34,889 nt of DNA, taken from NCBI GenBank assembly GCA_033442325.1, contig JAWQFM010000003.1, positions 607,552-642,440 of the forward strand, read 5' to 3'. This document shows, piece by piece, positions 5,266 to 8,200 of this stretch; position 1 is the stretch's first letter; each line of letters begins with the position of its first letter. Origin of the DNA: Salpingoeca rosetta. Its lineage: Eukaryota; Protista; Choanoflagellata. The notes beneath the pieces were generated by a model. The model was given only the letters and a program-made list of their open reading frames with translations. It did no database searches and was not told where the DNA came from. The translations under genes were made by a program, and so were the position numbers.

Positions 5266-8200
5266 TTAACAACGTGTTTCCTCATTTCCTGCATTACCAT
5301 TGTGGTGTGCAGAGCCAACCGCATCCAACGCAGCGTGTTGTTGTTGTTGTTGTTGTTGTTGTTGTTGTAGTTGTTGTTGTTGTTGTTGTTGCTGTTGTTG
5401 TTGTTGTTGTTGTTGTTGTTGCTGTTGTTGTTGTTGTTGCTGTTGTTGTTGTTGTTGCTGTTGTTGTTGTTGTTGCTGTTGTTGTTGCTGTTGTTGTTGT
5501 TTGTCATTGGGCTGCTGATCGTCATGTGCTCGCGTCACACCAACAACTTCAATCCCACCGCCATAATCGTAGCCGTCCTCATCCCCATCCCCATCGTCAT
5601 CGTCATCGACACTCGTGCCGTCACCGCCAGCAAGTGCAGGCATCCTGTGTACACGTCCGCGTTGGCGCACATCCCTCGACTGCCGATCGCCCACGCCCGA
5701 CGACGATAGCGACGACGGCGCCATATCCGCCACGTTCAGGGCGCGGCCACCACCAGCTGTGTCGTTGTTGCTGCTGTTGGTGTTGTTGTTGTCGTCGTTG
5801 CGGTTGGTGTTGGTCGTGCCCGTATCCATGGCGGATGGGGAGCGGGACAGCAGCAGCAGAGCGCTCCCGTCAATGCTGTGCGAGCGCGAATGGCGGCGTG
5901 GGGTCGTCCGTTTCCTGTCCACAATGCACACACACACACATGGAGGGTGAGGGAAGTGTATATGTGCGTCTGTGCGTTTGTGCGCGTCCGTGTGTGTGTG
6001 TGTGTGTGTGTGTGTGTGTGTGTGTGTGTGTGTGTGTGTGTGTGTGTGTGTGTGTGTGTGTGCGTGTGTGTCTGTGTGTGTCTGTGTGCGTGTGCGTATT
6101 GGATGCAGGGGGCAGAAGGCAGCAGCAATTTGGCACGTCTTACCTCTGCAAGAAGTACATTCAGCATGACAGTGCATCCACAACAGAGCATCCTTCCTCG
6201 AACCACCTCATGTGTGTTTGCATCTCACCCGCCGTAAAAACGACACGTGTCACGGCTTAGCTCCAAATCGGTGATTTTCACCAGCGCGCCCTGTCGACGC
6301 CTGGGTTTTGAGGCGCAGCCAGCACAGGTGAGGGGAGACGGGGACGGGATGAACATGCGCAATGTGCAACGCACACGTGCCTGAAATCGTTGTGCAACAG
6401 CACCACACATACACACATACATACATACACATACACACACATGCACATACATACACACACACACAAATACAATCACACACAGAACACTCCCTACGTGTTG
6501 ACACCTGATGATGTAGCGACGCAGCTCCTTCACCTCCCGTACGAGGTGCGGATATGACGCCAGCTGCTGCCGCCGCGTGCTCACGACCGTGCGTAGGTGT
6601 GCTGGCTCAAGCTGCAGCAGGCCAGGGTTGTGGGGGCCCGTTCCCCACCCGCACGTGCCCGCGCGGCGAAAATCCGGAACGAAGTCGTCCAACCCTGAGG
6701 CGATGCATGGGAGGGGATGCGTGAGCGGTGAGCGGGGACGTGTTGTAGTTGACGTGTCGTATCGAGTGCACATGGGAGAGAACCGCGAGAGGGAGTTGCG
6801 ACATGGATGCGTGTGTGAGCACGCATGACCAAGCTCAAGTGTATGTGAGGTACAGAGAAACAGAGAGAGGGAGACAGACAGACAGACAGACAAAAAACCA
6901 CACAAACAACCAAACACACGCACACGCACAGAGGGACCGAGAGAGACGAGCAGCCGCAGCAAAGCGTGGTGGCGTGCGACCTGCTCACCCATTGTTTTGA
7001 GCCACAGCAGCACATCGCGGTTTGTCCACTTGCTGACGCTCTCCTGGCACACGAGGAAGTTGCAGCTCTTGATGTCGCAATGCACAAGGCCTGCATGGGC
7101 ATGTTGCGTGTGTTGGGAAAGGGAGGGTGTTGAAAATGGGGCACAGATGACAAAAACAAACACACACACAGCCACACACACACACACACACACACACACA
7201 CACACACACACACACACACACACACACACACACACACACACACACACACACACACACACACACACATACACACACACGGACACACACACGGACACACATG
7301 TGCACACAGACGATTACCAAGGCGATGAAGGCAGGCGACGCTGCGACAGCAGTCGATGGCCATGTTGAGGCGCACGTCCCAGTCGGCAAGCTGCTTATCC
7401 CGCCGCTGCATCCCAAACAGCTCAAGCAGATTGCCTACGCAAACACACGCACACATACACACATGTAAACAGCCGCAGACAGCCGCAGGCAGCCGCAGGC
7501 AGCCGTAGGCAGATGTGAAAGAGTGAATTCTTGCATGTGTGTATGAACGGAGGAGTGATCGCTTGCAGTTGAAGTCACCATCCATCATCACCATCATCAT
7601 CACCACCATCACCACCATCACCACCGTCACCATCACCACCACCATCACCACGACCTTCCACCACCCATCACCACCACCTGGCCAAAGACACCAAACCTGA
7701 GCAGAGTTCCATGACGGAGGCAATTGCCGGTGGAGCGACGCACACGCCCTCGCCTTGCACGACATTTGGGTGGCGAATGGTGCACAGGAGGCTGTTTTCC
7801 AGGCAGAAGTTGCGAATGGTGTCCTTCTCCAGCTGTATGCAATACAGCATCTTGATTGCAACGTCCTTGCCCTCGTACACGCCACGGTACACGCGGCCCG
7901 TTCCGCCCGCGCCCAGCAGCCGCCGCTTCAGCACCTCCTCTGGCGCAATGTTGTCTTCCAGCTTCTGGAACTTGAGGTTTGCCATGTCGATCATTGGGCA
8001 CATGTCCCCAACCACGTCCATGTATCTGCCGAGCGCACTTGCGGCAACATCGTCCAGCTGGTCGCCTTGCATCATGGGCAGCAGCGGGCACTCCTCGTCA
8101 TCCTCATCACCGCCACCGCCACCACCACCTCCTCCTTTTCCCGTGGCAAGCGACTCGCGGCTACTGCTGGTGGCCCTTGTGCTGCCCCGGAGCGTGCTCT

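Follow-up and report, generated by a model that had tools for sequence, protein, structure and literature searches.

Does the choanoflagellate Salpingoeca rosetta encode a membrane receptor that carries only half of a protein kinase, or has the other half of that kinase dropped out of the genome assembly? The question is raised by a minus-strand gene in a stretch of 34,889 nucleotides of contig JAWQFM010000003.1 (here the window; all positions are counted from its first letter). As assembled, the gene runs from a seven-helix membrane domain through a kinase N-lobe and catalytic loop into low-complexity sequence. A preliminary description of this DNA had read it as a genuine half-kinase without a C-lobe, whether pseudokinase, scaffold or partner of a domain supplied in trans, and had listed an assembly error at a microsatellite as the last of its alternatives. 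It is this last alternative that the evidence favours. We find that no real half-kinase lies behind the assembled sequence: in our reading, to which we assign a probability of roughly 0.85, the S. rosetta assembly has lost a C-lobe segment and the gene encodes a complete seven-helix-receptor/TKL kinase. The gene as assembled comprises the following features, in the order of transcription.

7698..9068, minus strand: exon A, the first coding exon; seven-helix membrane domain, linker and kinase N-lobe
7318..7434, minus strand: exon B; NLLELFGMQRRDKQLADWDVRLNMAIDCCRSVACLHRL; in P0001; 3' splice site confirmed by RNA
6989..7090, minus strand: exon C; catalytic loop LVHCDIKSCNFLV and start of the SAM-like insert
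6505..6694, minus strand: exon D; remainder of the SAM-like insert; RNA joints 6693/6988 and 6299/6504
6229..6300, minus strand: exon E; RRQGALVKITDLELSRDTCRFYGG; bears DLE, the DFG equivalent
5917..6228, minus strand: apparent intron, 312 bases as assembled, including the (CA)n tract
5990..6094, no strand assigned: (CA/GT)n microsatellite of ~52 units (Tandem Repeats Finder)
5266..5916, minus strand: last coding exon, C-terminal tail; in-phase acceptor 5914, AG at 5916-5915, stop codon 5268-5266
5869..5892, minus strand: tail motif HSRSHSID, residues 8-15 of the tail exon
5336..5501, minus strand: CAA/CAG array, ~55 Gln; period 3, 55.3 copies (Tandem Repeats Finder)

Exon A matches the beginning of NCBI protein P0001 with 100% identity. 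In translation its N-lobe, with the Gly loop GAGGTG (GAGGTGRV) and VAIK, runs up to VMELCS(G), and its Pfam kinase match covers profile positions 5-83. Exon C retains the Asp, Lys and Asn of the catalytic loop HCDIKSCN. Exon E codes for (R)RRQGALVKITDLELSRDTCRFYG(G) and is followed by GT at 6228-6227; its DFG position reads DLE (KITDLELS), in which the metal-binding Asp is retained and Phe and Gly are replaced. The frame of the tail exon opens with KRTTPRRHSRSHSIDGS... and continues through an Asn/Ser-rich stretch, DDDDDGDGDED and ~55 Gln to ...NEETRC and the stop, a low-complexity tail whose translation agrees with its earlier account. On the plus strand, the convergent gene codes for a succinyl-CoA ligase, by a match to Pfam Ligase_CoA at E = 3e-15, and has its poly(A) site at position 5088. 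We note that the two convergent genes end close together, within 5088-5220, with transcript coverage of the kinase gene fading at ~5220 on the minus strand. The window is without any N run, and the assembly therefore gives no sign of a problem.

The kinase domain, a TKL-like member of the eukaryotic protein kinases (Pfam PF07714/PF00069), nevertheless breaks off in its middle. P0001 matches the Pfam profile PK_Tyr_Ser-Thr only at positions 5-142 of 258, in keeping with the earlier observation that the N-lobe and HCDIKSCN are intact. After KITDLELSRDTCRFYGG, no frame of the window codes for an APE motif or a C-lobe, and a profile of the C-lobes of relatives (alignment A2), run against all six frames of window positions 1-12000, returned no match (best E = 3, 2 bits), which upholds the earlier statement that the assembled kinase reaches the convergent gene with neither an APE motif nor a C-lobe. 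Protein searches of the 55.4-Mb assembly (G000), with the C-lobe exon of the closest orthologue and the C-terminal half of P0014 as queries, found no C-lobe of family grade; the best matches were 36-49% identical, the level of a generic TKL kinase, and none lay within the window. The N-lobe, for its part, is 83-92% identical to those of close orthologues.

We mapped three stranded S. rosetta RNA-seq runs (X21-X23), together with independent DNA contigs of the resequencing run X1, on window positions 4700-7800, with RNA joints listed from a threshold of 3 reads. The RNA confirms the joints 7318>7090 (7089/7317), 6989>6694 (6693/6988) and 6505>6300 (6299/6504), all of which end in CT..AC on the plus strand, that is, GT..AG on the strand of the gene. 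Both splice sites that flank the apparent intron are also in use, each joined to sequence other than its assembled neighbour. At the donor of exon E (6229), reads share an identical loose end at 6228 (3 + 6 + 8 = 17 reads, agreement 1), and at the acceptor of the tail exon they share an identical loose end at 5916 (14 + 11 + 5 = 30 reads, agreement 1); these 30 reads establish that the acceptor 5914, proposed from the letters of the DNA, is real. The loose ends at donor and acceptor differ from one another. A direct splice from 6229 to 5914, as the preliminary description had assumed, finds no counterpart among the RNA joints listed (threshold 3 reads, three runs), and none of the three runs has any RNA depth in bins 5948-6155. 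Given the zero depth and the missing joint, neither the 6229>5914 splice nor the read-through of the NCBI model is the expressed form at the depth sampled.

The loose ends have no place in the assembly. Neither their 30-mers, searched with up to 2 mismatches, nor the 17-mers next to the junctions, searched exactly, occur in the 55.4 Mb of G000, and no 12-mer of either loose end was found in the window. The transcripts thus bear exon sequence that is unassembled, which contradicts the half-kinase in each of the forms given to it earlier, be it pseudokinase, scaffold or a kinase complemented in trans. The preliminary description had held that further exons with an APE motif and the C-lobe helices would speak against its proposal; extra exon sequence is indeed found in the transcripts, and the APE motif itself was not seen in it.

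Transcription of the tail exon proceeds on the strand of the kinase exons, at a depth that is similar to ~3-fold higher, the higher depth being compatible with 3' bias. RNA depth is seen on both sides of the polyQ array. At 5764-5798, RNA piles up to 51x, with a joint that 'goes back 35', numerous loose ends made of GTT/GGT repeats, and C>T differences at positions 5771 and 5774; most likely, either reads from other repeats of Asn codons map here or the AAC tract varies in length.

These results also account for the public gene model. P0001, named 'TKL protein kinase [Salpingoeca rosetta]', has 618 aa and ends in ...RFYGG. Its stop is an intronic TGA at 6228-6226 that overlaps the GT donor; the model is without a splice at 6229, and the 6229>5914 splice forms no part of it. 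P0001 stops early because the next exon is absent, so that the model reads into the intron as far as that TGA. Its C-terminus ...FYGG is an artefact of the missing exon.

What the missing part should contain can be judged from relatives, which are uncharacterised metagenomic and transcriptomic proteins (P0013-P0017, P0105, P0115, P0145 and P0195, with P0017 from a EukProt transcriptome). They have in common a 7TM domain, an N-lobe with GAGGT.RV and VAIKMLYC, the catalytic loop HxD[IL]KSxNFL, a SAM insert and K[IL]TDLELS, and are 43-53% identical to P0001 over its residues 380-618. The S. rosetta gene shares this family architecture and its signatures in alignment A1, namely VAIKMLYC, K[IL]TDLELS and, placed after the catalytic loop and before DLE, a SAM insert. 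In P0013 and P0014, Pfam SAM_2 is matched at the position that aligns with the S. rosetta insert. The DFG position reads DLE in 12 of 14 relatives, with DFE and DME in one each (1/14).

Every relative that is complete in the region carries [DE]VPQTVNWTAPEV 26-51 residues past the DLE motif, followed by a full C-lobe: W[TS]APE is present, and the C-lobe continues ... RPSA ... LMRRR.xNRTL. The Pfam profile PK_Tyr_Ser-Thr is matched at positions 136/138-258 in P0013 and P0014 and at 166-258 in P0195. Genomic DNA of the closest orthologue is available in the Logan contig L004, in which three C-lobe exons follow within ~1.2 kb downstream of the KITDLELSR exon (GTPNWTAPELL...SDIYSLSMVLWEILSGRIPF; ...RPAIPPDTDEAYSHLLEDAW; RPTAGEILTRLEDMKRKYVFNRT).

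The tail exon belongs to the same family. Its HSRSHSID is an instance of the family's C-terminal motif HxR[STA]xSx[DEGS], in which H, R and S are invariant in alignment A3. Among P0013-P0017, P0115, P0145, P0152, P0159, P0174, P0182 and P0195, each protein that extends to its C-terminus has the motif in its final 23-123 residues; the motif occurs in 11 of 11 relatives that reach the region, 164-459 residues after the APE, and the pattern, which was composed after the S. rosetta tail had been seen, has a background of 2 occurrences in 202,622 residues of non-family proteins. Because this motif opens the tail exon, we regard the exon as the family's normal C-terminal tail and not as a replacement of the C-lobe. 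The family motif and the read-supported junction lie in the polyQ frame; the earlier choice of that frame as the coding frame of the exon was correct. The possibility that the tail exon is a separate gene was considered as well, and is ruled out by the family motif in its first residues and by transcription from the same strand.

In most relatives the tail after the motif is short (23-123 residues). A polyQ like that of S. rosetta was seen in no relative inspected, P0195 having a short Gln/Pro-rich stretch; the S. rosetta array is a species-specific low-complexity extension of the tail. As a basic Ser motif, HxR[STA]xSx[DEGS] may be a basophilic-kinase or other regulatory phosphorylation site.

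In the assembly, HSRSHSID lies only 24 residues after KITDLEL, and by this spacing ~170-200 codons, plus introns, are missing. From the 47 junction reads, the comparison with the family and the position of the tail motif, we infer that the missing S. rosetta exons encode the C-lobe. The segment lost between 5917 and 6228 would then encode what remains of the activation segment, followed by the APE motif, C-lobe and linker (again ~170-200 codons and their introns), and the most plausible cause would be that the assembly collapsed or was misjoined at the (CA)n microsatellite. Transcripts splice exon E to one unassembled exon and another unassembled exon to the tail exon, the latter probably being the family's C-terminal tail, lengthened in S. 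rosetta by Asn-rich, acidic and polyQ sequence. The predicted protein is a seven-helix membrane receptor with a complete TKL-type kinase as its cytoplasmic tail. A SAM domain would form a loop that separates the catalytic loop from the DLE motif, in a kinase that keeps its catalytic Lys, its HCD...N loop and the DLE Asp.

Several attempts were made to find the missing C-lobe sequence. When the C-lobe profile and the exons of a close orthologue were used in a word search, only other species were returned, from libraries that apparently lack proteins derived from S. rosetta reads, since exon A found only P0001 at 100% in them. An exhaustive representative search with A2 returned multi-kinase proteins and members of the family, none of which carried the S. 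rosetta junction peptides when screened by script. Two candidates for the missing C-lobe were rejected: P0023, the more promising of the two because its end is read-through of a CA repeat, belongs to another assembly, and P0022 to a different contig of a different species.

The position of the break was examined with the DNA contigs of X1. The contigs listed match 5511-5977 and 6149-6400 without difference, and none of them bridges the masked CA tract (5978-6103), at which the contigs end. Contig 4 aligns only from 6149, its 85 letters below 6149 remaining unaligned, and X1 depth is absent over 6104-6148, where the assembly reads tcttgcag/ag/gtaaga. The true break may accordingly lie outside the CA tract, close to 6148. 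The sequence 6104-6228 occurs once in the genome by a duplication check. Holes in X1 coverage prove nothing by themselves, as 5220-5327, which is certainly real, is likewise uncovered; we therefore place the loss only within 5917-6228. The (CA)n tract at 5990-6094 is most likely the site of the collapse or misjoin.

The same DNA evidence bears on the alternative that survives best, according to which a real deletion between two CA tracts arose in the reference culture and the cultures of the 2026 RNA-seq carry the intact allele. The assembled sequence is contiguous and without N, its flanks at 5511-5977 and 6149-6400 agree letter for letter with the independent DNA contigs, and real deletions can be microsatellite-mediated. 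We nonetheless consider such an allele improbable, as collapse at a dinucleotide repeat of ~100 bp is a routine assembly artefact, no listed X1 contig spans 5978-6103, and contig 4 departs from the assembly by its unaligned letters. To our knowledge, all laboratory S. rosetta are descendants of one isolate, which we also count against it. Taken more broadly, as a deletion allele of the reference strain (7TM plus half kinase) or a real truncated isoform that exists beside a full-length form elsewhere, the idea has, in our estimate, a slender chance of being right; if true, the allele or isoform would be a natural experiment on a module of 7TM, N-lobe and SAM domain without a C-lobe.

It could also be that the extra exons exist and code for no canonical C-lobe, being divergent or degenerate, so that the protein is catalytically incomplete. 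This alternative turns on the residues that the reads reveal. On each side of the missing part 30 nt are known, that is, 10 residues per side. In the frame of exon E, the loose end after that exon reads ...FYGGLSFDPPDVPS, or, in a fuller read-through, ...RFYGGLSFDPPDVPS; the unassembled exon joined to exon E begins LSFDPPDVPS. Before the tail, in the polyQ frame, the loose end reads ...RSLRRQPAVQ and is followed by RKRTTPRRHS (RKRTTPRRHSRSHSIDGS). The DPPDVPS that comes after FYGG resembles the [DE]VPQT found in the family just before NWTAPE, while LSFDPPDVPS as a whole appears only loosely similar to the relatives, and this loose likeness over so few residues is what speaks for non-canonical exons. 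Against them stand the N-lobe, which is 83-92% identical to those of orthologues with intact C-lobes, the intact HCD...N loop together with the catalytic Lys and the DLE Asp, and the place of DVPS, which sits where DVPQT precedes NWTAPE in the relatives. We hold this outcome to be very unlikely.

Scarcely credible is, finally, a truly truncated half-kinase, an N-lobe and catalytic loop followed by a disordered tail and serving as pseudokinase or scaffold: the assembled DNA and P0001 are both without a C-lobe and a 6229>5914 splice would be in phase, but no such joint is listed, no read extends into the intron to reach bin 6052-6155, the two splice sites have other partners in 47 reads, and a C-lobe is present in every relative complete in the region.

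A complete receptor kinase, its C-lobe lost in assembly, thus remains our preferred reading, and the main value of the analysis is a correction of the public gene model P0001. A census of the kinome, of pseudokinases or of GPCR-kinase fusions that used P0001 would list this receptor-kinase among the incomplete or dead ones. Exons can vanish silently from the S. rosetta assembly at intronic CA tracts, with no N gap left behind, and other odd truncations in this genome warrant a comparison with RNA reads before they are interpreted.

Besides the relatives, three known systems invite comparison. Pseudokinases and truncated kinases resemble the gene only in its assembled model, with an N-lobe and no C-lobe, and differ from it in that the catalytic residues are retained and the transcripts carry further exons; for these reasons we attribute the likeness to the assembly. 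The collapse or misjoining of microsatellites in draft eukaryotic assemblies offers a parallel. As there, the loss lies beside an intronic dinucleotide repeat of ~100 bp, the annotation runs into an intronic stop, and the RNA points to splice partners that are absent from the assembly. The present case differs in that there is no N gap, so that the error is invisible from the sequence alone, and in that the break point is not fixed, lying at the CA tract 5990-6094 or near 6148.

The third comparison concerns the protein itself. GPCR-kinase fusions (GPCR-TKL/K and GPCR-TK) have been described in choanoflagellates (eLife 2025; PMC12716839), where GPCR-TKL/K were reported only in acanthoecids (PMC12716839, Garcia De Las Bayonas and King 2025) and no choanoflagellate GPCR-kinase fusion has been functionally characterised (PMC12716839). 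Compared by description only, GPCR-TKL/K and the S. rosetta gene are both choanoflagellate fusions in which a TKL-type kinase stands C-terminal to a seven-helix domain. They differ in that S. rosetta is a craspedid and not an acanthoecid, and in that its family has a SAM insert in the kinase and DLE in place of DFG. The craspedid gene and its relatives may constitute a 7TM-TKL family that was missed by the survey (PMC12716839), perhaps owing to the truncation of the public model.
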